In this document: positions 7,280-34,855 of the stretch, piece after piece | Numbering within the stretch: position 1 is the first letter of the stretch | Layout of the letters: the number at the start of each line of letters is the position of its first letter | NCBI RefSeq assembly: GCF_001194135.2 | Contig: NC_068998.1 | Coordinates: 21,482,764 to 21,517,618 of the forward strand | Length of the DNA: 34,855 bases | Direction of reading: 5' to 3' | DNA from: Octopus bimaculoides | Taxonomy: Eukaryota | Program-made: the position numbers and the translations under genes | The notes under the pieces: model-generated | What the model was told of the DNA's origin: nothing | The model's input: the letters and a program-made list of their open reading frames with translations, nothing else | The model's database searches: none

Positions 7280-7485
7280 TTATTAAGCCCAGAACTTATT
7301 CTCTCGATCTCTTATGCTGAATCGCTACGGTACTGGGACGTAAAAACACCAACACCGGTTGTCAAGTGGTAGTGGGAACAAACAAACACAGAGACACACA
7401 CACATACATACATACATACATACATACATACATACATACATACATACATACACACACACATATACACACAGACATATATACAACG
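7280..7485 (-). mobile_element. tRNA-SINE type B, 3' half only, with internal (TATG)n microsatellite
   Basis: Reverse complement matches the tail of the full copy at 12577-12965 (gacaaccg..gtg..tttacgtccc, gatagaataagt). Ends at atatatacaacg, where the SINE head should continue. Confidence 0.8.
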
Positions 7486-7493
7486 TAATCTTT

Positions 7494-9105
7494 TTTTACG
7501 GCGTACCTAAAATACACAAGAGCATAAAAATTAATGAAGCATGCAAACAACCACCAGGTAAATACATAAATTTCCTAGCACCAGAGGATTTAAAGTTTAA
7601 GCCTATCATTGCCTGTGAAACCCACCACTTAAACAATTTTCTAGACATTCAACAGAAACCCTTGCTGAAATACATCAAACGTTTCATTAGAGACGATCTA
7701 AATATGTTTAAGCACCTACCAAAAACTAATGAAGAGACATTATCAGTTTCCTTCGATGTTATTAATCTTTACACCAACATCCAACATGACTATAGAATAG
7801 AAGCAATACAATTCTGGCTGGAAAAGTACCCCGAAGAATTTCCGGAACGCATAAACCAGGTTTTTTATCATTGCAACTTTGAAATTTATACTTCAGAACA
7901 ATTATTTCCTATTTGATGACACCTATCGACAAAAATGTGGAATTGCGATGGGGACAAAAGCAGCCTCTGTTCTGGTGAACCTAATTATGGGATATTTTGA
8001 ATTCACCATATAAGAAGTGTCACTGCAAAAATATGGATATCCATTTCATGATTATCTAAGAGAGAACTGGAAAAGATATCTGGATGTCAGATTTACCATT
8101 TAGAAGGAGACCAAATATAAACTAAACAGTATATATTCTAACATTCAGTTTACAATGGAATATAGCAAGAAACGGCTCCCATTGTTAGATATATTCTGAT
8201 AAAAAATCAATAACCAAATTATAACTGACATTTATCATAAACCAACGGACTCAAAACAATATCTTCTACTTACTTCATGCCACTCGTAACAACATCAAAA
8301 GAAATATTCCCTTTAATTTAGCGAAAAGAATTTTCTGATGGAAATACACGGGATCTCCGTCTTCAGGACCTCAGAATAACACTAACTGAGACACGCCATC
8401 CACTCTCACTTATACATGATGGAATTAAACGTGTCAAGAAAATAGGCATTAAAGCACTAAGGGAAACAAAACAAACCAAAAACTCCTCATCTCAAAATTC
8501 TACCGTTTATATCAACTCACAACCATAGAAACACTGGCATAGAATGCTATTGTACAAATCTGCCAATGCTTACTAGGGATCCAAAAACTAACAACATCCT
8601 GAAGACACATTAATTCATCAAATGTAAAAAGCAACTCAAATCTCTGAAAAAACTCCTGACAAATGCAAAGCTTTACACAACAAATACGAAACCGATGGTT
8701 AAAAAATGAGGACGTCCAAACTGTGGAACATGCCTCAGCCTACTAGAAGGATCGGAATTTCAATTCAAACAAGGGGAGAGGTTCACAATTAAGACCAAAT
8801 GCATGTGTGCATGCGAGAATGTAATCTATGTTTGAACTCGTTCAGGTTGTGGATATAACTATACAGGATAGACAAGTATGGAACTTAGAAGGAGAACCAC
8901 ACTACATAAGAAACAGATCCATTTGCTAAAGTATAGGCATATATATTTGAGTGAATACGTAGACTGATGTGCAGGGAATCGCCAACCAAATTTCACAGTT
9001 TTCTCCATCTACCAGTGCAAAGAAACAATTGCTGTACTAGAACGCTTAAATAAAGAAAATTTAGTTATAGAAAAATACAGAACACGCTTAAATATGAAAG
9101 CATAA
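7494..9105 (+). mobile_element. Penelope-like retroelement, 5'-truncated and decayed (RT + GIY-YIG endonuclease)
   Basis: FYGVPKIHK, FKPII, SFDVINLYTNI, YRQKCGIAMGT, WKRYLD, TDIYHKPTDSKQYL, then CGTC...NVIYV*TRSGCGYNYTG (GIY-YIG) and KENLVIEKY..LN* at the C-terminus. Many stops and frameshifts. Confidence 0.92.
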
Positions 9106-9598: not shown

Positions 9599-10447
9599 NN
9601 NNNNNNNNNNNNNNNNNNNNNNNNNNNNNNNNNNNNNNNNNNNNNNNNNNNNNNNNNNNNNNNNNNNNNNNNNNNNNNNNNNNNNNNNNNNNNNNNNNNN
9701 NNNNNNNNNNNNNNNNNNNNNNNNNNNNNNNNNNNNNNNNNNNNNNNNNNNNNNNNNNNNNNNNNNNNNNNNNNNNNNNNNNNNNNNNNNNNNNNNNNNN
9801 NNNNNNNNNNNNNNNNNNNNNNNNNNNNNNNNNNNNNNNNNNNNNNNNNNNNNNNNNNNNNNNNNNNNNNNNNNNNNNNNNNNNNNNNNNNNNNNNNNNN
9901 NNNNNNNNNNNNNNNNNNNNNNNNNNNNNNNNNNNNNNNNNNNNNNNNNNNNNNNNNNNNNNNNNNNNNNNNNNNNNNNNNNNNNNNNNNNNNNNNNNNN
10001 NNNNNNNNNNNNNNNNNNNNNNNNNNNNNNNNNNNNNNNNNNNNNNNNNNNNNNNNNNNNNNNNNNNNNNNNNNNNNNNNNNNNNNNNNNNNNNNNNNNN
10101 NNNNNNNNNNNNNNNNNNNNNNNNNNNNNNNNNNNNNNNNNNNNNNNNNNNNNNNNNNNNNNNNNNNNNNNNNNNNNNNNNNNNNNNNNNNNNNNNNNNN
10201 NNNNNNNNNNNNNNNNNNNNNNNNNNNNNNNNNNNNNNNNNNNNNNNNNNNNNNNNNNNNNNNNNNNNNNNNNNNNNNNNNNNNNNNNNNNNNNNNNNNN
10301 NNNNNNNNNNNNNNNNNNNNNNNNNNNNNNNNNNNNNNNNNNNNNNNNNNNNNNNNNNNNNNNNNNNNNNNNNNNNNNNNNNNNNNNNNNNNNNNNNNNN
10401 NNNNNNNNNNNNNNNNNNNNNNNNNNNNNNNNNNNNNNNNNNNNNNN
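9599..10447. other. Assembly gap
   Basis: N run followed by (TA)n. Confidence 0.99.
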
Positions 10448-10485
<38 letters not shown>

Positions 10486-10494
<9 letters not shown>

Positions 10495-12072: not shown

Positions 12073-12576
12073 TTGCTGATGTGTAGCGTGTGTAAATCAT
12101 AAATTACCGGATATAGCATAATCAATAATACACATTAGTCATTTGTAAACTTAAACCAGACTTTGAAAACACAAATATTTAAGTTATAATATATTAACTT
12201 ATATGAGACAACGAGTGTGCTTCTACTTATTTGTTCGAACTGTTAGAGATGTTGCCGGAATGTATTTGGACATAGGTCTTAAGAACTGGAGCCTAAAAGA
12301 GCTAAACGATAACTCTTCCCTATAATTTCTTCTTTCCTAAACGTGATCTCTTGCTGTCGAAAATCCCAGATTAATCTACATCACGTAAAGAAGCTGAAAA
12401 GTAGGAAGCAAGGTCTAAGTTACTCCTTCACCAAAAGAAAACCACATAAAAACGGCCATTGACTACCCTGGCGGTGCTCCAGCATTACCACAGACTTTGG
12501 GCAGAATTACATCAAAATCTAAAGAATAGAAGAATAGAAAAACAATAGGTGAAAAAATATATAGGTTAAATGTATA

Positions 12577-12745
12577 GGCGCAGGCATGGCTGTGCGGTAA
12601 GTACCTTGCTTACCAACCACATGGTTCCGGGTTCAGTCCCACTGCGCGGTACCTTGGGCAAATGTCTTCTACTATAGCCTCGGGCCGACCAAAGCCTTGT
12701 GAGTGGATTTGGTAGACGTAAACTGAAGAAGCCCGTCGTATATAT

Positions 12746-13825: not shown

Positions 13826-14789
13826 CTCTGTTATAATTGAAGCTTTGCTACGTGTTTGTGTATCTCAGTTCCAGTTTGTGTCTTGACGTATTCATATACA
13901 TGAATTTGTGTTGTGTCTGCGCATGTGTGTCTGCATGACTGTGATTCTGGTGTGTGTACGTATGTGTTTACGTTTGTGTTCGAATGAAAATAACTTTGGT
14001 TATTACGTGTGCCCTATATTAGCCAGGTGTTAAAAATATATTTAAAATAAAAGCGTTATCCAAAGCTGTTTTATCAAGTTATGACATCATAATTGCAAAT
14101 GTATAGAAATGTTACAATATTGCTATACTATTCATTTGCAATATTAACACCTATTTGGAAGCCAGCTCTTTGCAGTTATCTATTCAATACATTTTTGCGT
14201 TAATATACTTAATAATCTTTATTTTCTCTTATTTTTTCCAACATTTCCGAACGCATTGACCGTCCGGGTTTCATCGCCAGTCTTTGTGCAGGATTCCAAA
14301 GAATTCTACAGTGAATGAATCCCTGTCTTAGCCAACCGAAAACGTTTGATGATGACACAACGATAGATGCCGTAGAACTTACTCCAACGGTAGTAGATTT
14401 GTTATCTGCAGCCACGCCAGACGACATGGGTGATTTTTGAAGAATGCAGTTTGTAATTTTGCTTTGACAACTTAAATTGCTTTCATCTCACACTTTCTCC
14501 GCCCTCTCTCTCTTTCTTTTTGCACAAACTCATAAACAAGCAGAAACTCATATAAACATATGTGCGTGTATGTGTGTACGTAGACATGTATATTTCTTGA
14601 GTAAGAGAATTGGAGTTAGATACTACATAGTTCAATAAATATACGTCCAAACTATGTTTTAACCAGACATAGAAGACATTGCCGCAATGTCAATTGCAAA
14701 TCACGGAATACTCCGTTATACTACTTTGATAAAATGATGCTCAGACGATCGTTACCTTCTACAGAATGTTGTCTATGCTCATACATACT

Positions 14790-19810: not shown

Positions 19811-22014
19811 GGGTGTTAGGCATGCGAATAAACTATATAATAAATGGGCTATGGAATGTTATGCTTGAGTGTTTTATATTATGGGAACTTATTTTAGAAG
19901 ATGATTAATAATTCCTCAAGGCCATTATGCATGTAAAAGAAAAGGAATCGTTACATGGCCGATTAGAAATTCAAATTGTACGATATCAAATGATCTAAAA
20001 AAATATGATGAAAAAAATAAGATGAAAAGTATTCATCTGTCAGTAGAAATTCGTGAATAATCTCAAACAGAAAACATTTCCTCTATTATCTCTGACTTAA
20101 TATTTGCTTCAGAAAATATATTCCCTTGATATTTATTCCATTGGCGTGTTCACTGTTTCTATAATCAGTAAATAAAAAAACTAATTACTGTTTGAAACAT
20201 TTCCGTAGATGAGTGAATAACACTTACGATAATATTAATGTATTTTGTCATATATTTATGTTTATACTCGAAGAAGTACTATTTCATATCTACGAAACAG
20301 TCACCAGTTAAACGATATTCGTTTATAAATATTACAGACGAGCCATCACTTGTGCTTGGAAGAAAGAAATAGACAAGAGTATGGAAGGTTCTAACAACAA
20401 TCGGTGTACTGCATTATTTTTAACAGCTGTTACCTAAATTACATAGAAATCAGTTGTGAAATCGGCACACACTTTCAGTAGTTATACAGTCTATTTTTAT
20501 CGCTTAGTATGAACTTGATTTACATTTAATAATTGTTTCCATTTTATTGGATCAGCTCAGCATAAAATTGCCATCATAAACGCAACACAAAGCTAATGAC
20601 TGCTTATGAATCATGTGTACTTTGGCATTTTGAATGACATATGATGAATGTCGATAGCCTAGTAGTTCAGCGCGGAAAGAAATATAAAGTAAAAATACGA
20701 TATTAATGCATTAAGTTAAAATAAGATGGGATACATTTATGAAATGGTCGCTTATCAGGGAACGTAGAAAGGTTATCTTTCTCTGTTGTGTGTTATAGAA
20801 TTTCGCTATGTCTTATATTTACGCTGAGCTAATTAAATGAAATAATAAATCATAGCAACCATCTCTGTGCAATACATTTAAATTTTCAAACATGAAACAT
20901 GTTCGATGCTTTACAGTGGTGGGCTATTGTCAGATCTAACAAAGAAAAATAGTTACTGAGCTTAACTTGTCCGTACGTCTTAATCATTCCCTCGATAGAT
21001 TACATCTGCAGGGAATGCATTCAATTTCAGATAACTTCCTTGAACATACAGAAGATTTATCCATATCAAAAATTACAGCATTACAATTTCGTTTCCTGCG
21101 AAAATTGAAAGATTAATCCAGGAGGAAACACGTTAAATGAATATAAATGAAAACAGAAAATCCAAAATGTATACCTAAGTTTTAAAGTTACAGTGTCGTA
21201 GATTCTACTTCATTTAGATATTGTTAAATGCATTGCGTTTTCTATTTCTCGACATGAAGTAAGCTGAATATAACTTAGCTTCAGTTATATTATAATATAT
21301 GTAGAAGAGATTTTATGAGACGTGGAATAGTTATCAGATAATGGGTAAGATATTCTACACAGGGAATCTCACGTTTTCTTATTTTCTATAGCAAACCTAA
21401 ATATATGTTATTATTCAGTTGACATGGATGGTATTTGTCTTTTATGAAGTCCATAGGAAAAACTTTTTTATCGTCTGAGTATTGTTATTCTTATCCTTGC
21501 CCCGTCATAAGTCACTGGACAATGTTAATTGCAATAATACTCTATGTATATAATAACATATCTTTGTTAATCGTATGTGACTTGGTAAAGTAGAGATTAT
21601 ATCAGTTTTCCTTTGTATACTAAATGATTAAAAAAAAGCTGACCGAATTCAACTGGGATGAATTTATTTACATTTATGCATATTTTACACCGATTGTGAA
21701 GTGCTCATCAGTATTCTACCAACCTAACATATATAAAAGAAAGAGGTTATATTAAACTGAACAGTAGAAATAAGTTGCAGTAATATACAAGTAATTCCAA
21801 GTTTGTAACCATGATAACAATATAAATGTAAACTAATCGTATCACACCAGGAGTATAATCATAATTTGTGTCTCCAATTGCAGGTATACACATACTGACA
21901 TCTTTATCAGAAATATTTAATATCACTTAAATTCCATTTGTTAAAAAATTATCGGGTCAGTACCTAAAGCGGTGTTTATATTGTAAAATAAGATGGATTT
22001 CTACTTTTTCTCAG

Positions 22015-22134
22015 TTCCAGACCATTGCAAGTTACATCATTTACTTATTTGATGCGTCTGATATGAGAAAGTGCCAAGCTTATCTTACCAAATTTGAAAT
22101 GAAAAAGATCATACAACTTGAGGATTTTCTATGG
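22015..22134 (+). CDS. 120-nt exon-like cassette, copy A (part of inverted duplication 22003-22351)
   Basis: actttttctcAG | FQTIASYIIYLFDASDMRKCQAYLTKFEMKKIIQLEDFLW | GTAAGC. Only one frame is open; phase 0-0. Confidence 0.4.
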
Positions 22135-23453
22135 GTAAGCTGGAAGCAGTCATAAAATCGTTGAAGGTAGTTCGTTTGGAGGAAATCCCAGCTGACTATA
22201 TAATGCTACTGTGGTAGGGCAATACAGTCGATCTTTTCTGAACGTTTCCAAAATACAAAAACACCCGGACATCACAGGACTTCGAAATTGCCTTTGAGAA
22301 ATTGACGGTAAAACTGATTTAGATTCGTAGATAAATTACTTCTGAAGGAATACATAAGTTACTTCTGTTTCTTGATTAAGCTATTTTGCAGGACAAGAGG
22401 AGTTAGATCATGTGGCTAACCTCAACCTGCACAAACGGATGTGGGAATTGCTCGTAGCATATACGCCGACAGGTTATGGAAATATTCTTAGTAGAAAGTT
22501 GGTTAGATGTTGCAAATTACATCTGTGTGAAATATTGTTAACGTTGGATACAATTCACTAATAATTCTAATTAGTATCAACACTTTTCATGTATAGAACT
22601 GCCAAGTAGTGAGGGAATGTTGTTTCACTCAGCGTAATTACAACCACACGTTTCAAAATATTGTTCGACTCGATAATATAACAATATGTAAAGAGAAGCC
22701 TAAAATAAATATTATTGTGTGTAATTTCATTTCCTTGGAAAAAAAAAACGTCTGCTTCTCACGTTGTATAATTACTTCAAATGAAATATTTTTCTAAGCA
22801 ATAAATTTTATTTTTTCAATAAGTTTGGTTTTAATCAATACGCCTTGTTTTAAGCATAGGCTTATACAATATCCTTAGTGTTTTATTATTTTTTTAAGAG
22901 ATAAAGAGAATAAGCTTAATATAAACTACTATAGTCTATTGATCTTCGACTTGAAAAGGTTGTGACCCCATGCAAAATGTCAGTTACCTCAGAGTAGAAG
23001 TAATATCTATAACTTGGAATTTACATAAATTCAGCTAAAAAAACAAACTATTCCCATAGTTTTAGAGGAAGGAGAGGAAGTGTTTGAAATTCAACTGCGA
23101 GTATTCGTAACCGTATACCAGTTCAGTTTGTAAAGTAACTGTACATCCCTCAAGTTCTAAGTTATAAAAGGAGCACTAAACATTGTCCCCACCATACAGA
23201 GTCACTGCAATGCATATTACGAGACAAACGACCAGGGAGTTTATCTCCACTTCGTTTCCATTTGGGAAACATGTTATTTCGTTTACACAATTTAAAGCCT
23301 TTGAAAAAGGTAAGAGACATAAAAGCTTACATCTAGTCTTAAATTCTATGTTACTGTATCTTAAATAAACATATTACTGGTTATATATTGATATCTATCA
23401 TTCAAGTATTTATATCATAATATCCGTTTTTAACATTTTTAATGCAAGTTAAC

Positions 23454-23670
23454 GCGGCGATCTGGCAGATTCAATAGCGCGCCGGCCAAAATGCTTAGCG
23501 ACATTTCGTCCGTCTTTACGGTCTGAGTTCCAACTCATCTGAGGTCGTTTGAACCTCAACATCCTTTCGGGATCGATAAAATATGTACCAGCTAAATACT
23601 GGGCGTCGATGTAATCGACCTAATCCTTTCCCCGAAATTCCTGGCCTTGTACAAAAATTTGAAACCAAAA
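23454..23670 (+). mobile_element. tRNA-derived SINE type A
   Basis: gcggcgatctggcagattcaatagcgcgccggccaaaatgcttagcgacatttcgtccgtctttacggtctgagttc...gatgtaatcgacc. Confidence 0.9.
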
Positions 23671-24505
23671 TGTTTACTCAAGGTCAGTGAATGGGAGAAA
23701 GAGAGCATTGCACCAATTTCGTTGTGTTGTTCATTGATGTCTCCCTACATTCCGACTTTAAATCACGGCAATGCCACATCTGGATTGAAATTTACACCGA
23801 TTCTTACGAAGGATTAGTTATGTTTGCGGGGATGAGATCTACATTACAAAAAACATAAAATTTCTTTAGTTGTATAAATATGCCCGTATGGCTTAATGTG
23901 GCTAAAATGAAAATGCAAAGAAAAAAAAAAGAAAAGAAAAGAGAGCAACATTCTGTAAAAGGCCACTGCTAGTTATTATAGATATGAGGCTATCGATGTG
24001 TTGAATTGCCTAGTTTGCAATTAATGGTTTTGACAAGCTTTGATACTGCTACATTGTTTAAATAATATCTAATACACAAAATAGTGCAACTCAGAAGAAC
24101 TGAAATCAATACGATATACCATAGAATGCAATATTGAGAGGGAAATCAGAGTACATATTCTCAATGGAGCTGAAAACACACTATGATACAGTCTGTCATC
24201 AACTGCCAACCTCTTTTTCCCTGCACACAAAAATCATGGAAGAAATGCATTTGTGTGATCCAGTAGAGGTGGAATCACCAGATAAGTACTCTTTCTTTCT
24301 CGTTCTATTTTTTGCACCAACTTTATGCACGTTTTTTCCACGTTTTTTTTTGTTATTTTCTTAATGTCCAGCGTTCTTGCTTTTAAATATATATATAATG
24401 CATAAACAGAGCCTTAAGGATTAAAACGTATGAGCCACTTTACTCGCATGGGGGCATTTTAAACAATTTATTCTTTAATTTGTATTTATACATTCACACA
24501 CATAT

Positions 24506-24722
24506 ATTTAATTCTTTATTGCCCGGGCTAAACATAGAGGGAACAAATCATGTCAGACAAAGGGATTAAGTCGATTACATCAACTCCACTTGATGTAAAC
24601 CGGTATTATTTATCACAAGCAAAGTCGAGCTCGGCGGAATTTGAACTCAGAACGTAAAGACAGACGAAATACCGCTATGCATTTCGCCCGGAGTGCTAAC
24701 GTTTCTGCCAGCTCGTCGCCTT
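24506..24722 (-). mobile_element. tRNA-derived SINE type A (well-preserved head, distinct tail)
   Basis: Reverse complement gives ggcgacgagctggcagaaacgttagcactccgggcgaaatgcatagcggtatttcgtctgtctttacgttctgagttcaaattccgccgagctcgac. Confidence 0.92.
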
Positions 24723-24811
24723 ACACATATATATTATACAGACTGTTTACTGCGGTACACATTCCACGCTTCTAAAAAGCAAATATAAGTTCGTTTACAT
24801 AAGTGTTGTTG

Positions 24812-25237
24812 NNNNNNNNNNNNNNNNNNNNNNNNNNNNNNNNNNNNNNNNNNNNNNNNNNNNNNNNNNNNNNNNNNNNNNNNNNNNNNNNNNNNNNNNN
24901 NNNNNNNNNNNNNNNNNNNNNNNNNNNNNNNNNNNNNNNNNNNNNNNNNNNNNNNNNNNNNNNNNNNNNNNNNNNNNNNNNNNNNNNNNNNNNNNNNNNN
25001 NNNNNNNNNNNNNNNNNNNNNNNNNNNNNNNNNNNNNNNNNNNNNNNNNNNNNNNNNNNNNNNNNNNNNNNNNNNNNNNNNNNNNNNNNNNNNNNNNNNN
25101 NNNNNNNNNNNNNNNNNNNNNNNNNNNNNNNNNNNNNNNNNNNNNNNNNNNNNNNNNNNNNNNNNNNNNNNNNNNNNNNNNNNNNNNNNNNNNNNNNNNN
25201 NNNNNNNNNNNNNNNNNNNNNNNNNNNNNNNNNNNNN
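24812..25237. other. Assembly gap
   Basis: N run. Confidence 0.99.
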
Positions 25238-25774
25238 TATATTATATATTATATATTCCATATTCTATATCCCACAAAAATTTTACAAGAATATAAATAA
25301 AAAACATAAAAAGCAGACAGAGGGCAGAGATGAAGTGCGTGATGTTTTACACTTAACCTACAAAATATATATATTTTGACTGAGAACATTCAGATTGTAT
25401 TCAATAAATGCATTGCTAGGGACATTTCAATGTAGAGAAGAAAATGAAGTTAATTAAGATTTAACCTCAAGTACACACAATGCACGATTATACAAGATTT
25501 ATTTTTGTTATATTAAATGGTGAATACAGAAATGTGGCGGTCGAATCAGTAATACAAACTGTCTATTCACTTTCGGTTTCTACCATTTAAAAAAGTTTTG
25601 TTTAAATTAAATGATAAATTACATCACCCATAAATTTTCCCTGTGATAAACCCCAAATATTGTCTGCGTAAATAATATTTACAGCATTGTTATATCATTA
25701 AAACCGTATTTTTTCTGATAAAATATCAATAATAATTATAAAATAAAGCATTAAAGATTTTATGATTATTTTGA

Positions 25775-25842
25775 CTAGACATTTCTGTTAGATTCTGATA
25801 TTATGTCAATCAAGTAACCTCTTGAAATATCAATATAAAAAT
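25775..25842 (-). CDS. Candidate terminal exon Y (FYIDISRGYLIDIISESNRNV*), paralogous to 30872-30944
   Basis: Long pyrimidine tract then AG; shares peptide and stop position with the 30.9-kb copy. Confidence 0.3.
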
Positions 25843-27215
25843 CTTAATTGAAAGAGAAGTGTTAACAAATGAAAATAATAGAATAAGAGAAGTAACAAAC
25901 GATAATAAATTTATAAATATACAAAAAAGATATTGTAATAATTTTTTTTATTCCAGAAAAGTGTGTTATTTAGAGATAAATCTGAGGCCGAATATTGCAC
26001 ATATAATTCTTCTGTTTTGTTATATTCGAATCCTATTTTCAAATCCTCCTGAATCACACAGAACAAGACTGCATTTTATGTAAGGATATAAATTCCCATG
26101 TTACGCTAGGATTTGAGAATCTTGTTATTTATATCAAAACACCAAATGCCGAAAATTAACACTATATACCTAAATGAACTTTTAAATGGAATACAGTAGT
26201 AGGCTAAACAATCAAGCAATTGTATGTTTCTCCTTTTTATGCTATTTATACTTCCAGTCTATAGCTCTCTAAGTTAGGCTCATATCTTGTATAACATTTG
26301 TTAGCTGCAATGCTAGTACTACTATTGAATGATGGGTAGTTCTTCATTTTGCCCTACTGAACCCAGTCACACCTGTCACACGTTGGCAAATAGGACCAGA
26401 AGGGAACACGTTGTGGTCCTATTTGCCATTTGCACGCAAAATTTTAAAACAATTATCATTCAGTGAAATAGAGTAGCAGATAGCAACTTAGTGAAACTTA
26501 AGTAAACGACTGGAACAAAAGTGATTTTCTTTTTCTTTTCAATTTTGCGGTATAAATAAGAATATGTCGGTATTCTTATTTTAAATAAATTCACTGAATA
26601 AACTACGGTAATTTTTTATTAATGAAATTCCTGAGTGATCTTACGTAAAACTAATAATTTCTAGGTCCGAAAAGACGAGTCTTACTGTCTATAATTCATC
26701 CCCTATAATTCATAATATATCTACTGGCTTGTGATTAAATTATACTTGCTAATATAATCAGGTCGAAATTATTAATTGCCATTCAACTTTCTTAGTTTGA
26801 TGAAGTAAACATCAGTGCTTGCGGTAAGACACCGATAATAAAGGTAGGACCATGGGCGTTTCATATGAGAAGTGGTAGGGGAGAGAAACAGAGAGTAATA
26901 GAAAGAAAGAGGAATAGAAAGAGACAGAAAAGAAGTAAATAAAATCAAGAGTGTGGTGAATAGAAAAGATGGGATCTGAATTAAGTTGAAATATAAGAAA
27001 GGATCTAATGGATTAAGCAATACGTGGGTAGAGGCATAATGTCCATTCAAATCTGTCGCTGATGTAGCACTAATTTCGCTCGAATACGAAACATCTTTCC
27101 TTCCGGTCCATTGATAATGGAGACCCATGGTTTCGAGAATCCTCACATTAATGAGGAAGCGATGAAATGGCCTGTACTGTTGCTGTGTGTGGGTGTGTCC
27201 TGGCATGCGTATATA

Positions 27216-27412
27216 CAATAATCCCTCGGCTATCGTGGGTGTTACATTCCAAAACCTCTCTCAGAAATAATTAAAATCTAAAACATTATAAGTCCCTTCA
27301 GAAACCCGCGATATACTGAGGAGTCTGCAATATAAATTTACATATATTATCCAGAAAAATCCGCGATGTACCGAGTGCGCAATAGGCGAACCGTGATGTA
27401 CAGAGGGCGTGA
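27216..27412. mobile_element. pogo/Tigger-type MITE, degenerate
   Basis: TA-flanked start CAATAATCCCTCGGCTATCGTGGGTGTTACATTCC, internal ccgcgat repeats, and a degenerate inverse end gaaccgtgatgtacagaggg. Confidence 0.55.
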
Positions 27413-27449
27413 TAGGTGAATATATATACACCAAAGCACACACATGCGT

Positions 27450-27694
27450 AAAAAAATAAATGCACCCTTTTAAAGTCTAGCGAGGCTCATGGGCTCGGTT
27501 TCCCGATTTCAATGGCGTATGCGTTCCCCAGCTTGACGGGACGCCTGTCCATCGCAGCGTTACTAATTTTTGCCAGGTGAGTAGAAATAAAGTGTTGTGC
27601 ACAAGAACGCAACGCTTCACCCGGTCCATGATTCGAAACCACAACCTTACGATCATGGTGCCAACACCCTAACCACTAAGCCACGCACCTCCAC
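27450..27694 (-). mobile_element. tRNA-derived SINE type C
   Basis: Reverse complement: A-box tggcttagtggttagg, B-box-like ggtttcgaatc, central tgcgatggacaggcgtcccgtc (resembles the V-domain from memory), T-rich end. Confidence 0.85.
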
Positions 27695-27925
27695 GCACAC
27701 TTACGTACATTCCTTCAGAAGTAATTTATCTACGAATCTAAAGCAGTTTTACTGTCAATTTCTCAAAGGCAATTTCGAAGTCCTGTGATGTCCGGGTGTT
27801 TTTGTATTTTGGAAACGTTCAGAAAAGATCGACTGTATTGCCCTACCACAGTAGCATTATATAGTCAGCTGGGATTCCCTCCAAACCAACTACCTTCAAC
27901 GATTTTATGACTGCTTCCAGCTTAC

Positions 27926-28045
27926 CCATAGAAAATCCTCAAGTTGTATGATCTTTTTCATTTCAAATTTGGTAAGATAAGCTTGGCACTTTCTCATATC
28001 AGACGCATCAAATAAGTAAATGATGTAAGTTGCAATGGTTCGGAA
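27926..28045 (-). CDS. 120-nt exon-like cassette, copy B (part of inverted duplication 27710-28057)
   Basis: Strong tract tgttttctccctcaactttttctcAG | FRTIATYIIYLFDASDMRKCQAYLTKFEMKKIIQLEDFLW | GTAAGC. The other two frames are closed. Confidence 0.5.
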
Positions 28046-28250
28046 CTGAGAAAAAGTTGAGGGAGAAAACACAGCACAGTGAATGTGAGGTTCGCTAACA
28101 AACAGGAAGCGATAAATCACTCCACTGTGACGCTAAGGACGCAAGAGTGGGTACTTCTGCCAACTTAGTGTGGCAAACGAGTGACTAAAGTAAGGATACA
28201 CAGAGTACCCCCGGTAATTAAAGAGGCGTGGCTGGTGGCAGCTACGTATG

Positions 28251-28707
28251 CAGGCCCAACTGCACGTTGGAAGAAGACGCCAAATATCCGTAAACTACCT
28301 TAACATATCACCATAAAACTATGAACACGCGTTGTCCTCGAGTAAATAAACGAAACACATTCATGAAATGGTTCAATTACATATCAGTTTAAGACGTGGT
28401 CGAAATAAACGGAACCAGATTTTTGAATTTTTATTTTGTATATAACTACGAACAGAGTTGTAGATACGTTGTACTCATCTGTACGTATATTTGTTCGTGC
28501 TTATATGCATTTGGGTTGTATTACACTGATGATGGAAAAAAAGGGATTTCACTCTTAATCCTGAAATCAGTTGATATGTAATTGAACCGTTTCATGAATC
28601 TGTTTCGTTTATTTGCCCGTGGACGATGCGTGTTTATAGTTTTATGGCGATATCTTAAGGTAGTTCAGAGATATTTAGCTTCTTCTTCTAGCGTGCAGGT
28701 GTGCCTG
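28251..28707. mobile_element. Inverted-repeat element with ~140-bp arms (MITE or inverted Penelope-type terminal repeat)
   Basis: 28251-28388 is the reverse complement of ~28572-28707 (caggc...aactaccttaa.atatc.ccataaaacta...ttcatgaaa.ggttcaattacatatca). Flanks are TG/TA within a TACGTA palindrome. Confidence 0.8.
28520..28582 (+). ncRNA. Type I hammerhead-ribozyme-like motif, probably degenerate
   Basis: Stem I ATTACA/TGTAAT, core CTGATGA, stem II GGGATT/AATCCT, GAAA, minimal stem III ATCA-GT-TGAT, AUA cleavage triplet. A 10-nt insertion sits before stem II. Confidence 0.5.
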
Positions 28708-28803
28708 TATACGTACTAACTTGCCCTGAATATATATTTAACCATCACCGGTTGATTGCATGTTGAATACCTGATAAAATCAAATATAGATTTTATCCTT
28801 AAA

Positions 28804-28843
<40 letters not shown>

Positions 28844-29849: not shown

Positions 29850-30331
29850 TTCACCTTTATTTCATATTAACTGTATTTCGGCCAAAACAGTTTTGCGAGA
29901 TGTTTGGAGTTCTGATGTAAGTTTTCAAACCTTTGTTCTCGGATTTTGTTGAACCAAAGCATTTACTCCTTCGTGCCGAATAACAAATTTTGGCCTACCC
30001 CTTCGTTTATTTACAAGGCTATCATCTCCTGAACGAGAGCTTTGGAACCACGTCAGAACAGTTCTGATGTCATCAAAACCATTACCAAAAGCCTGCTTGT
30101 AGAACTTCTGCGGCAGAGCGACCCAGTTTGTACTCATACGAGAAAATCACTCAACATTGTATGGTTGTTATCATTTTCATAAGGTCTGTGGATACGAATT
30201 TTGTTTACCAATATTGTTGGGAAAGAAAAAGAGTCAAGATTAAACGCAAGGTATACATAATTGAGATGACTTTTCAAATGACTGAAATAACAAATAATTA
30301 AAAATGCGACACTTCATGTGAAACAACCTAA
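29850..30331 (-). mobile_element. Mariner (Tc1/mariner) element, 5' end: TIR plus decayed transposase N-terminal HTH
   Basis: TA|TTAGGTTGTTTCACATGAAGTGTCGCATTTTT TIR, then IFSYEYKLGRSAAE / QAFG..IRTVLTWFQ..RSGDDSLVNKRRGRP....ALVQQNPRTKV, matching the mariner paired-like HTH. The catalytic domain is not seen. Confidence 0.88.
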
Positions 30332-32335: not shown

Positions 32336-32742
32336 TAAAAATAATTACATCCTCCAACGTACAATATAAATTATAGCGAGGAATGTCACTTTAAACAGAA
32401 ATGAATTTAACTTTAAAATGAAGTTTCCTTTCTTTCTTTTCTAAAACTTACGTTAAAACTTTCAATATCTAGTATGGAAAGAGAAAATTTAGTTTCACAA
32501 AGGATGCTTAAAATACTCTTGCCTTACAAAGATATCGAAGACTGTCTTTTTGCCAAGAAGTATCAAATGGTACAAAGGCAGTCAACTTCAACAGTCATAA
32601 AACGACGTATGTGATCTCAGCGGTATGTATGGAGTAGATCATTGTTTTATTTGCGATATTTGTTTCGTAAACTAACTTTCAAAATACAATATGATATTGC
32701 ACAGGTATAAATCAACGTGTGTACGTATATATATATATATAT

Positions 32743-32968
32743 NNNNNNNNNNNNNNNNNNNNNNNNNNNNNNNNNNNNNNNNNNNNNNNNNNNNNNNNNN
32801 NNNNNNNNNNNNNNNNNNNNNNNNNNNNNNNNNNNNNNNNNNNNNNNNNNNNNNNNNNNNNNNNNNNNNNNNNNNNNNNNNNNNNNNNNNNNNNNNNNNN
32901 NNNNNNNNNNNNNNNNNNNNNNNNNNNNNNNNNNNNNNNNNNNNNNNNNNNNNNNNNNNNNNNNNNNN
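32743..32968. other. Assembly gap inside (TA)n
   Basis: N run. Confidence 0.99.
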
Positions 32969-34098: not shown

Positions 34099-34688
34099 GA
34101 GTTTGGCATTTAAGGAACCAATTAGGTGATGGAAGATTTAAGTGAAAATGAAATGAAATATTTTTAATAGAAAGAGTATCCAATGGGTGGGAATAGGCAA
34201 CACGGTACTGATGGAGTTAGAAATTAGTTTGGAAGTTAGAGAAATTGTGGAGTAGATAAGCTGAAGAATTTCGGTAAGTTTTATTTTTTCCTGTCATTCA
34301 GCTGTTCTTGAATTGATCAAAAGATATGTTGCTATCATAATTTGCAATATATTAAAAAGTTCCTCCTGATTAGGAAATAGACGAATATTCATGTCTCCAC
34401 ACATTGTAAGTAGAAGTTATATTTCTTCTAAACTGTAAGTGAATGTCATTTCATACACACAGGCATCTAAACTATTGATAATATCTACAAAGTTTTATCT
34501 ACATCGACCTCTGGGGACGATGCTTATCACATCCAGAATGTTCAATGAATTTATTGATGAATTTTGCAAAAAGTGTCGACGTTTACTGGAATTATTTAGT
34601 ATAACAACAGCTGAATGATCGGTATTCTGCATACATATATTAGTCAATGTGTGTAAATAAAATTAAATATTTAACGTGTAAATAAGTA

Positions 34689-34855
34689 GGCGCAGGAATA
34701 GCTGTGTGGTAAGCAGCTTGCTTATCAACCACATGGTTCCAGGTTTAGTCCCACCTTGGACAAGTATCTTCTACTATAGCGTCGGGCCGACCAAAGACTT
34801 GTGAGTGGATTTGGTAGACGGAAAATGAAAGAAGCCCGTCGTATATGTATATATA
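34689..34855 (+). mobile_element. tRNA-derived SINE type B, 5' half (runs off the window)
   Basis: Aligns to 12577-12747 (gctgtg.ggtaag..cttgctta.caaccacatggttcc...gggccgaccaaag.cttgtgagtggatttggtagacg). Confidence 0.92.

Follow-up and report, generated by a model that had tools for sequence, protein, structure and literature searches.

The DNA analysed here, a window of 34,855 nt from Octopus bimaculoides, contains two nearly identical segments of about 350 bp in opposite orientation. The question raised by this arrangement is whether the pair is what the original prediction proposed, i.e., a recent inverted duplication of a whole exon cassette that provides the transcript with a built-in editing-complementary sequence. 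An inverted-repeat search pairs 22000-22351 with 27709-28060, that is, 352 nt that are 98% complementary and separated by 5357 nt, which is the longest non-simple inverted repeat of the window. Local alignment of the two arms over ~352-360 nt gives eight mismatches and no indels (plus/minus positions 22002/28058, 22019/28041, 22020/28040, 22031/28029, 22173/27887, 22183/27877, 22307/27753 and 22317/27743). In blastn, weak homology reaches 22359/27699, with nothing further on either side. Seven of the eight mismatches fall within 22003-22351, in agreement with the seven differences reported at the outset, and the arm peptides begin FQTIAS and FRTIAT, as described. The features of the locus are collected in Table 1.

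Table 1. Features in and around the two arms, in positions of the window.
Feature	Positions	Strand	Remarks
Upstream exon	14153-14452	+	Ends in GAAGAATGCAGTTT followed by gtaatt; start at 14153 estimated from the size of the 644-nt X12 contig
Parent arm	22000-22359	+	Last 12-15 nt of intron and first ~345 nt of terminal exon; inverted-repeat search, local alignment, blastn
Terminal exon	22015-22704	+	Low-abundance, lncRNA-like transcript; acceptor AG at 22013-22014
Core of older low-copy dispersed family	22120-22166	+	Kept across octopus species; 3-4 further contigs per species
Proposed donor GTAAGC	22135-22140	+	Unused in the RNA seen; X12 contig unbroken over 22015-22358
Assembly gap	24812-25237		In the spacer between the arms; outside arms and transcript
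tRNA-headed SINE	27447-27694	-	Abuts inner end of the minus copy; contig depth 10^4-10^5
Derived arm	27699-28060	-	Copy of the segment, inverted in the scaffold; inverted-repeat search, local alignment, blastn
Dispersed repeat	28059-28242		Terminus abuts outer end of the minus copy

The minus arm lies on a 3.6-kb piece of assembly (25238-28843) that has a gap at each side. The left flank of the gap in the spacer (24532-24811) is an extremely high-copy repeat, with a contig depth of 10^5-10^6 as against 10-50 for single-copy sequence, and no contig or read bridging this gap was found. Therefore, the 5.4-kb spacing of the arms and their inverted orientation are scaffold-level statements, taken from the assembly. 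In a short-read, gap-rich octopus assembly such as this one, a hairpin should not be read from how a 3.6-kb piece flanked by two gaps happens to be oriented.

The existence of a second copy is indicated by the outer flanks. In every DNA run, the contigs covering 20500-22061 and 27999-28161 are each of single-copy depth and lead into one and the same downstream contig; the two loci thus have unique flanks of their own, both at full depth, as in a segmental duplication. The contig across the outer junction (27999-28161) was recovered at single-copy depth in X1, X2, X6, X7, X11 and X13, and 10 of 10 probe words for this junction were found in 13 DNA runs, so that we count the outer junction as established. 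Because the arm-spanning contig is only 0.8-1.3 times as deep as the single-copy sequence beside it (five runs), a dispersed repeat or transposable element was rejected; with the whole unit at the depth of one to two copies, the duplication is genuine and limited to two copies. An uncollapsed haplotype (haplotig) was likewise rejected, since both versions have full single-copy depth and their outer flanks differ.

The interior variant letters of the minus arm are present in contigs of X13, X11, X2 and X7, and both variant states occur inside the reference animal. In three runs of one 2015 sample, two clusters of these variants appear in the states plus,plus (X6), plus,minus (X7) and minus,minus (X11). 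The interior variants might alternatively be alleles of the plus locus, which counts against reading them as a duplication.

The inner junction of the minus copy (27708/27709) we infer from the assembly. It is crossed by none of the Logan contigs of six DNA runs, and 0 of 5 sampled probe words were found in any run, where contigs can show presence, not absence; raw DNA reads cover it at about 0.7x per run, too thin to decide. These data are also what an assembly artefact would produce, in which the only real arm-like sequence is a stub of ~60 nt (27999-28060) that was extended through shared k-mers by way of an alternative haplotype of the plus locus and then joined to the SINE. Such an artefact would be in keeping with the position of the minus arm between two gaps, and with the finding that its letters always occur on a contig that continues into the flank of the plus locus (22352-23509). 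Averaged over the shared contig, depth is higher in X1 (1.16x) and X6 (1.29x), in line with two copies, and is not higher in the other three of the five runs (X2, X13 and X7). However, since two full-depth contigs feed one contig, the second copy must continue into the shared sequence, and its exit would be hidden from contigs regardless. Judging from the behaviour of assemblers, the ~66-nt unique unitig between the shared sequence and the SINE head would be a dead end prone to clean-up, and the inner junction is probably missing from the contigs because clean-up is expected to drop so short an end. Furthermore, 4-5 differences in 290 bp are far above normal allelic diversity, and at 22031 the two loci show a fixed difference across all animals, with G in all contigs of the plus locus and C at the matching base in all contigs of the minus locus and in the sister species. 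We therefore regard an artefact of this kind as unlikely, and proceed with the two-copy duplication.

The same comparison with sister species identifies the parent copy. In species B (3301 nt, 94.5% identity) and in species C (2726 nt), one contig crosses both ends of the plus arm uninterrupted (21902-22746), and the plus locus is therefore ancestral. No second copy was found in species B or C, where the only contig on the minus arm is that same orthologue of the plus locus; sequences orthologous to the outer flank (X15, 28073-28426, 93%; X16, 28067-28262, 94%) do not extend into the arm. Absence of the copy from the sister species and the polarity of parent and daughter are, like the outer junction, established. 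The duplication is thus recent, as was proposed, in that it postdates the separation from the sister species. Convergent paralogues, put forward initially as an alternative account of the two arms, are excluded. Since the duplication, the parent has acquired five fixed or nearly fixed changes and the copy three, and the arms now diverge by ~2%.

Both ends of the minus copy coincide with repeats. At the outer end, many contigs of all four runs start exactly at 28059 and run to ~28242 with ~83% identity, with a summed depth of 20-50x single copy. At the inner end, hundreds of reads and contigs end at 27694, the boundary of the SINE. A possible target-site duplication of this SINE, seen by eye, consists of TACGTAAGTGTGC (27707-27695) and TACGCATGTGTGTGC (27449-27435).

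Within the arms, the suggestion that the unit is a fragment of a transposable element holds for the core at 22120-22166, ~45 nt that have a few relatives elsewhere in four octopus genomes, and fails for the rest of the unit. Matches to this core start at 22120, 22125 or 22134 and end at 22166; X15, X18 and X19 share an identical stretch of 33 nt, and the contigs from these three that match the core also have similar flanks. About three extra core matches are found in the O. bimaculoides run X11, and core relatives overall number about 3-10.

The explanation that we consider probable is a lineage-specific, DNA-level duplication of ~360 bp in O. bimaculoides, whereby a segment of the plus-strand terminal exon was copied nearby, with no detectable transcription of the copy. 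The source would be 22000-22359, which takes in the last bases of a 7.5-kb intron with its functional acceptor and continues for ~345 nt into the terminal exon. One copy of this segment would have been inserted ~5.4 kb downstream, inverted according to the scaffold, and flush against the end of the older dispersed repeat at 28059; the SINE may have arrived later, at or beside the other end of the copy, at 27694. The mode of origin may have been templated insertion during the repair of a break, or template switching during replication.

In a different scheme, a LINE reverse transcriptase at work on SINE RNA would have switched, at the SINE 5' end, to unspliced RNA of the plus locus, and arm and SINE would have been co-inserted. 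An arm 5' of a SINE is the layout of known SINE/LINE chimeric retrocopies, and on the minus strand the arm indeed directly precedes the SINE head on its 5' side, with the same sense and at most 5 nt between them. Nevertheless, the arm includes 12-15 nt of the intron ahead of the acceptor and lacks any sequence from the upstream exon, no target-site duplication was seen around arm plus SINE, and the other end of the arm coincides with the terminus of another repeat. By eye, the imperfect duplication that can be seen seems to belong to the SINE by itself, and its 5' copy includes arm-derived bases. We consider a retro-chimera very improbable, and retain DNA-level duplication as the preferred explanation.

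The parent arm belongs to a transcript. RNA contigs (X12) cover 22015-22358, 22332-22515 and 22495-22674, with zero depth upstream of 22015. The 644-nt contig of this set begins to match exactly at 22015 and runs to 22358, and its non-matching 5' part ends in GGTGATTTTTGAAGAATGCAGTTT, whose single occurrence in the window is at 14429-14452, directly before a GT. The AG at 22014 is thus a used splice acceptor, as predicted, because this contig joins 14452 to 22015, across an intron of ~7.5 kb. The cassette exon that was to end at the GTAAGC donor did not hold up: the RNA reads through 22135 to ~22674, so that the exon beginning at 22015 is the terminal exon, although a minor spliced isoform could escape the contigs. 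An AATAAA lies at 22704-22709, just past the end of RNA coverage. The RNA evidence is one small contig set (X12), of a kind that loses minor isoforms and partial editing; in three deep raw RNA runs expression of the plus locus was undetectable, and these runs are thus uninformative on read-through. The transcript has at least two exons (up to 14452, and 22015 to ~22700), and is rarely expressed.

The proposed exon was also described as a 120-nt single open frame. Such a frame is unremarkable here, as 30% of the 120-nt windows in the region are open in some frame. Changes in frame in species B comprise three non-synonymous and one synonymous, with no visible constraint. The only homologue of the 40-aa peptide is its own 49-aa gene model, A0A0L8HLH7 (an 'uncharacterized protein' of O. 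bimaculoides), which is the same locus: it consists of an upstream ATG (14444) joined to 22015-22152 and, like the RNA, reads through GTAAGC. Its sequence (P0001) begins MQF-FQTIAS and ends DFLWVSWKQS before a stop. No Pfam domain was found in any frame or in either arm peptide. A LINE reverse transcriptase N-terminal motif was considered as a candidate element-encoded protein; word-index, PDB and Pfam searches found no such element protein, with the low power of a 30-aa query, and an exhaustive HMMER search with the same query, of similarly low power, returned only two repeat-protein artefacts. The longest open reading frame of the spliced RNA as we reconstruct it is 49 aa. We regard this frame, the 40-codon frame and the GTAAGC 'donor' as incidental; in this assembly, an AG and a GTAAGC that enclose a 120-nt open frame do not indicate a coding exon. 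The transcript behaves as a long non-coding RNA, and is apparently just that.

The arms could form a strong duplex if they were joined in one RNA. Pairing over their 352 nt would include uninterrupted stretches of 141 and 123 bp; the cofold energy is -615 kcal/mol. In O. bimaculoides hyper-editing is exceptionally high, and most of it falls in non-coding RNA that carries repeats in opposite orientation (PMC5625713). The RNA data do not extend this potential to use. On the minus arm, RNA in X12, X25 and X26 amounts to cross-mapping of the contig from the plus copy, and no transcript joining both arms was seen, in what is one expressing library only. On the unique part of the spacer (~22700-23380) there are no RNA contigs in X12, X25, X26 or X27, and RNA matches elsewhere in the spacer fall only on repeat elements (23380-23667, 23812-23955 and 24244-24811). 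No A>G difference is found in 660 nt of RNA contig, although partial editing would not show in contigs and none of the raw RNA reads fall on the locus; the sole RNA-genome difference is an A>C at 22317, a site that is also variable in the DNA. Therefore, of the proposed built-in editing-complementary sequence, the pairing potential stands, as a possibility at the level of sequence, and transcription of the minus arm, a joint transcript and editing do not.

A functional hairpin would require the transcript to pass its poly(A) site by at least 5 kb, so that the ~350-bp duplex attracts ADAR and is hyper-edited, or enters a small-RNA pathway. The complementarity of the arms and the editing propensity of the species favour this idea. 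The halt of RNA coverage at 22674, before AATAAA, the silent unique spacer, the cross-mapped origin of minus-arm RNA, the nature of the one RNA-genome difference, the lack of detectable transcript in the three deep runs and the scaffold-level orientation all argue against it, and we give it only a slight chance. Equally slight, in our estimation, is the prospect that read-through in another tissue or condition yields a ~350-bp hairpin, in which case the locus would be a young source of dsRNA, peculiar to this species and either hyper-edited or processed to small RNAs. If true, the locus would show a natural substrate of editing or silencing shortly after local inverted duplication gave rise to it; read-through, once demonstrated, would make the locus a dated example of how a dsRNA substrate originates, after the split from the sister species and at ~2% arm divergence. 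As matters stand, the arm pair is an ordinary small duplication, nothing shows the minus copy to be transcribed, spliced or used in editing, and this copy is probably without function.

Comparison with known systems leads to the same assessment. The locus resembles ADAR substrates formed by oppositely oriented repeats (PMC5625713) in being a near-identical inverted pair within 5.4 kb in a species with high hyper-editing; it differs from these, and from classical intronic editing-complementary sequences, in that its arms were never seen in one RNA and no A>G was seen. Classical editing-complementary sequences lie within the same intron-exon unit, whereas the octopus minus arm lies beyond the poly(A) site; and as the octopus 'exon' is non-coding, no recoding is at stake. 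A second likeness is to the hairpin-RNA (hpRNA) loci of Drosophila, where part of a transcribed unit is likewise duplicated in inverted orientation near the parent. The hpRNA loci produce endogenous siRNAs from inverted duplications of gene fragments, with both arms in one transcription unit and abundant small RNAs, whereas no transcription was found on the second octopus arm.

Small local duplications of non-coding DNA are common in large, repeat-rich genomes, and the octopus duplication, with no sign of use, is of little importance in itself. Its closest counterparts are small intrachromosomal inverted duplications and templated insertions, such as the filler DNA of break repair and FoSTeS/MMBIR-type duplications, from which it differs in that its orientation derives from scaffolding and its mechanism is a proposed one. 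Like these, it is a single copy of a few hundred bp placed a few kb from its source, inverted, ~98% identical and absent from sister species, and its ends lie at the termini of repeats, which are frequent sites of breaks and template switching.

The inverted arms of this region form a real, species-specific duplication of about 360 bp of non-coding transcript sequence, whose orientation is scaffold-based. No activity has been demonstrated for the duplication, which is an ordinary case of known small duplications and, by our own verdict, of low interest. An inverted-repeat scan of the window pairs 22000-22351 with 27709-28060, that is, 352 nt that are 98% complementary with 5357 nt in between. 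Local alignment of arm against arm gives eight mismatches and no indels, and seven of the eight fall inside 22003-22351, which bears out the near-identical inverted arms with seven differences of the original prediction; blastn stretches the similarity weakly to 22359/27699. Six N-gaps are contained in the window, and the one in the spacer lies outside both arms and the transcript. The left edge of this gap is an extremely high-copy repeat (contig depth 10^5-10^6, against 10-50 for unique sequence), and nothing among the contigs and reads placed on the window bridges it. When the 5.8 kb to its left were compared by blastn with the 3.6 kb to its right, no similarity was found besides the arms. 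Because the piece that carries the - arm is flanked by two gaps, the inverted orientation and the 5.4-kb spacing of this arm rest on scaffolding. The long 'inverted repeats' I2-I6 are repeat-finder artefacts.

Coordinates of the arms and of neighbouring features in the window
Feature	Position	Strand	Remark
+ arm (parent)	22000-22359	+	
arm (copy)	27699-28060	-	
Spacer gap	24812-25237		N-gap
Piece carrying the - arm	25238-28843		3.6 kb, gap on either side
Repeat core of the arm	22120-22166		
AATAAA	22704		
ORF in upstream exon	14315-14440		41 aa, MNPCLSQPKTFDDD...MGDF*
Spacer element	23487-23667; 24532-24811		Very high copy, opposite orientation, ~1 kb apart
SINE beside the inner junction	27694 to ~27447	-	tRNA-type head at 27694
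Dispersed repeat at the outer end	28059 to ~28242		~83% identity
Inverted repeat outside the - arm	28243-28386; 28572-28715		144 nt, 86% complementary, 185 nt apart
Second tRNA-headed SINE family	12553-12727; 34665-34829		Direct copies, 81-91% identical
Transposon-like ORF	7359-7916	+	
Transposon-like ORF	29925-30137	-	
I2-I6	10221-10488; 32701-32968		From N-gaps and (TA)n runs

Contigs of six O. bimaculoides DNA runs were compared with the arms: those of X1, X2, X6, X7 and X13 with the + locus or with both arms, those of X11 with the - arm only. All five sets contain the same three contigs, namely A (20500-22061), B (22032-23509) and C (27999-28161); X11 has contig C and, on the arm, a shorter contig (1329 nt). 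Contig B shares 30 nt (k-1) with A and likewise with C, and both A and C have single-copy depth. In X6, the depths of A, C, the next contig on the outer flank of the - arm and the next contig on the + locus are 13.7, 13.6, 13.6 and 13.6, respectively; in X1 they are, in the same order, 31.4, 32.5, 30.6 and 30.9. At 28029, 28040/41 and 28058, contig C shows the letters of the - arm, and it extends through 100 nt of unique flank; all 10 words sampled on the outer junction, near 28060, occur in 13 runs from at least nine samples. Two full-depth paths thus lead into one contig, and we conclude that a second copy runs on into the shared sequence.

The interior letters, at the clusters 22173/83 and 22307/17, read +,+ in X1 and X6, +,- in X7, -,+ in X2 and -,- in X13 and X11. 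Since X6, X7 and X11 are libraries of one 2015 sample, that animal has both states at both clusters. Such mosaics are as expected from contig clean-up that collapses two paralogous paths, although heterozygosity could mimic them; against heterozygosity, A and C are fixed for different bases at 22031 in every run. The - arm letters on the + locus contigs of X13 and X2 might suggest that the - arm is a mere allele of the + locus. We rejected this reading on three grounds: two full-depth contigs feed the shared contig, three runs of one animal yield three different mosaics, and the - letters are the ancestral states in sister species. All three are accounted for if the contigs have merged paralogous variants.

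At the inner junction (27708|27709), no contig of the six DNA runs crosses, none of the five words of a 61-nt probe occurs in any run, and the depth of 27712-27750 exactly equals that of contig B (or of the X11 arm contig) in all six. The mean depth of B is raised, as two copies would predict, in X1 (1.16x) and X6 (1.29x), and is not raised in X2, X13 and X7. We do not accept the missing junction as a refutation of the second copy, since the exit of this copy would be masked in the contigs, whatever sequence it leads to; from the way the assembler presumably works, a short unique path (~66 nt) that ends in the SINE head was likely removed as a tip. Contigs show presence, not absence, and the raw DNA runs X23, X24 and X42, sampled at 1-2%, gave only 0-4 reads per bin around the copy. 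In our assessment the second copy probably exists essentially as assembled; a real copy that differs at its inner end is unlikely, and it would be most surprising if there were no second copy at all.

To compare related genomes, contigs from three other octopus species were placed at 80% likeness. In sister species B one contig, of 3301 nt, is unbroken across 21902-22746 (94.5% identity, with 46 of 845 nt differing), and in sister species C one contig of 2726 nt is unbroken over the same interval, in each case across both arm ends. Because these contigs continue uninterrupted through both ends, the + locus is ancestral. The - arm interior is covered in both species solely by those same + locus contigs; with no separate contig there, species B and C lack a second copy. 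The duplication accordingly arose in the O. bimaculoides lineage. The best matches of these species to the outer flank, X15 (28073-28426, 93%) and X16 (28067-28262, 94%), have 59-122 additional bases unlike the arm. At 22031, 22173, 22183, 22307 and 22317 the sister species share the letter of the - arm, and at 22002, 22019 and 22020 that of the + arm; thus, five of the changes fell on the parent and three on the copy. The divergence between the arms is ~2.2%, versus ~5.5% between species.

The RNA evidence for a transcript at the + locus is one small contig set from 2015 (X12); in three deep raw RNA runs (X25-X27), not one read falls on 20500-23380. Bases 301-644 of a 644-nt X12 contig correspond to 22015-22358, so that the match begins exactly at the proposed acceptor. 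The non-matching part (reverse-complemented, the contig having been placed on the - arm) is GGTGATTTTTGAAGAATGCAGTTT, which the window contains a single time (14429-14452), with gtaatt directly after it. An exon ending at 14452 is therefore spliced across a 7.5-kb intron onto 22015, and the acceptor is in use as predicted. Two more X12 contigs extend the coverage to 22674, with zero depth upstream of 22015; the RNA thus passes through the predicted GTAAGC donor, with its junction at 22134, for at least 540 nt more. The donor is contradicted by this read-through, and the database gene model reads through it too. Consequently, the duplicated unit is not a cassette exon plus intron; it consists of an intron's last bases and the first half of a terminal exon. 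RNA coverage halts shortly before an AATAAA. The X12 contig combines G at 22307 with C at 22317, which neither assembled arm does, and A/C at 22317 is therefore probably still segregating at the + locus.

Among 5.8 billion proteins, the sole match to the 40-aa peptide of the proposed exon is A0A0L8HLH7, a 49-aa 'uncharacterized protein' of Octopus bimaculoides. This model (MQF + FQTIAS...DFLW + VSWKQS*) starts in the upstream exon, crosses the GTAAGC and ends at a stop; an exact-sequence look-up of it found no contig on record. It is the longest ORF of the inferred ~1-kb RNA, the next having 41 and 40 aa. In this AT-rich region, 30% of all 120-nt windows are open in some frame, as are 109 of 313 AG...GTRAG intervals. 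Neither arm peptide has a Pfam match, and translation of 22000-22800 in the + frames gave none either. The arm peptides do show the two amino-acid differences originally described, Q>R and S>T. Species B has at least four changes within the frame (S>T, one synonymous, F>S and L>R), and these give no hint of constraint. With no Pfam domain, only its own gene model as a match, and open frames commonplace here, the 40-codon frame does not stand as a coding exon, and the + locus RNA is treated as non-coding. The 41-aa ORF in the upstream exon, which has no Pfam match, stops two codons short of the ATG that opens the annotated 49-aa frame.

Hyper-editing in O. bimaculoides is exceptionally high and falls chiefly on non-coding RNA that contains repeats in opposite orientation (PMC5625713). 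The suggestion that one RNA holds both arms and folds into a duplex holds as to pairing potential, since the duplex would be very stable, with perfect runs of 141 and 123 bp and a cofold energy of -615 kcal/mol, but not as to a spanning transcript, as the RNA ends ~5 kb short of the second arm. The unique sequence of the spacer has no RNA matches, the repeat elements alone collecting them, and the - arm has no RNA beyond the cross-mapping + copy contig. In 660 nt of contig there is one RNA-DNA difference, an A>C at a DNA-variable site. On this thin RNA sampling, it is highly improbable that both arms share one RNA and form an editing duplex. Separately, the spacer element has a contig depth of up to 10^6 and is abundant in RNA reads, many of which show 'opposite strands' joints between its two copies. 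Its RNA reads have A>G-type differences at 23501, 23572, 23651, 24561 and 24568; as these reads are drawn from every member of the repeat family across the genome, the differences may reflect variation among copies and not editing.

The outer end of the - copy adjoins the terminus of a dispersed repeat, where many contigs in four runs begin at exactly the same base. The inner end lies at most 5 nt from the SINE head, at which hundreds of reads stop. This SINE has an imperfect target-site duplication of its own, TACGTAAGTGTGC and TACGCATGTGTGTGC (by eye), and as the first of these contains arm-derived bases, the SINE appears to have entered after the arm was duplicated. A retro-chimera of SINE and arm, made by template switching, is possible but not favoured, since no target-site duplication was found around arm plus SINE. 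Most economically, the copy would have originated by templated insertion at a break or by a replication template switch. The inverted repeat just outside the - arm recurs at moderate copy number in every octopus run and is possibly a MITE-like element. The second SINE family in the window is a different one; Rfam and tRNA scans of the window gave no matches.

The repeat core of the arm matches three or four further contigs in each of four species, and has about three relatives in O. bimaculoides. Among those further contigs, three species share a 33-nt stretch without any difference, and the contigs have similar flanks. Thus, part of the terminal exon comes from an old, low-copy dispersed family. 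The translation of the core (..GKLEAVIKSLK..G.[DE].IPA[DE]) seems to resemble a non-LTR reverse transcriptase N-terminal motif. A LINE reverse-transcriptase origin of 22125-22217 (FSMGKLEAVIKSLKVV.LE.IPAD) was unconfirmed by word-index, PDB, Pfam and exhaustive HMMER searches, the last of which gave two matches, to ARM-repeat and other repeat proteins, that are due to composition. The two transposon-like ORFs of the window, which have no Pfam match, may resemble a reverse-transcriptase fragment (+ strand) and a mariner-type helix-turn-helix (- strand), respectively.
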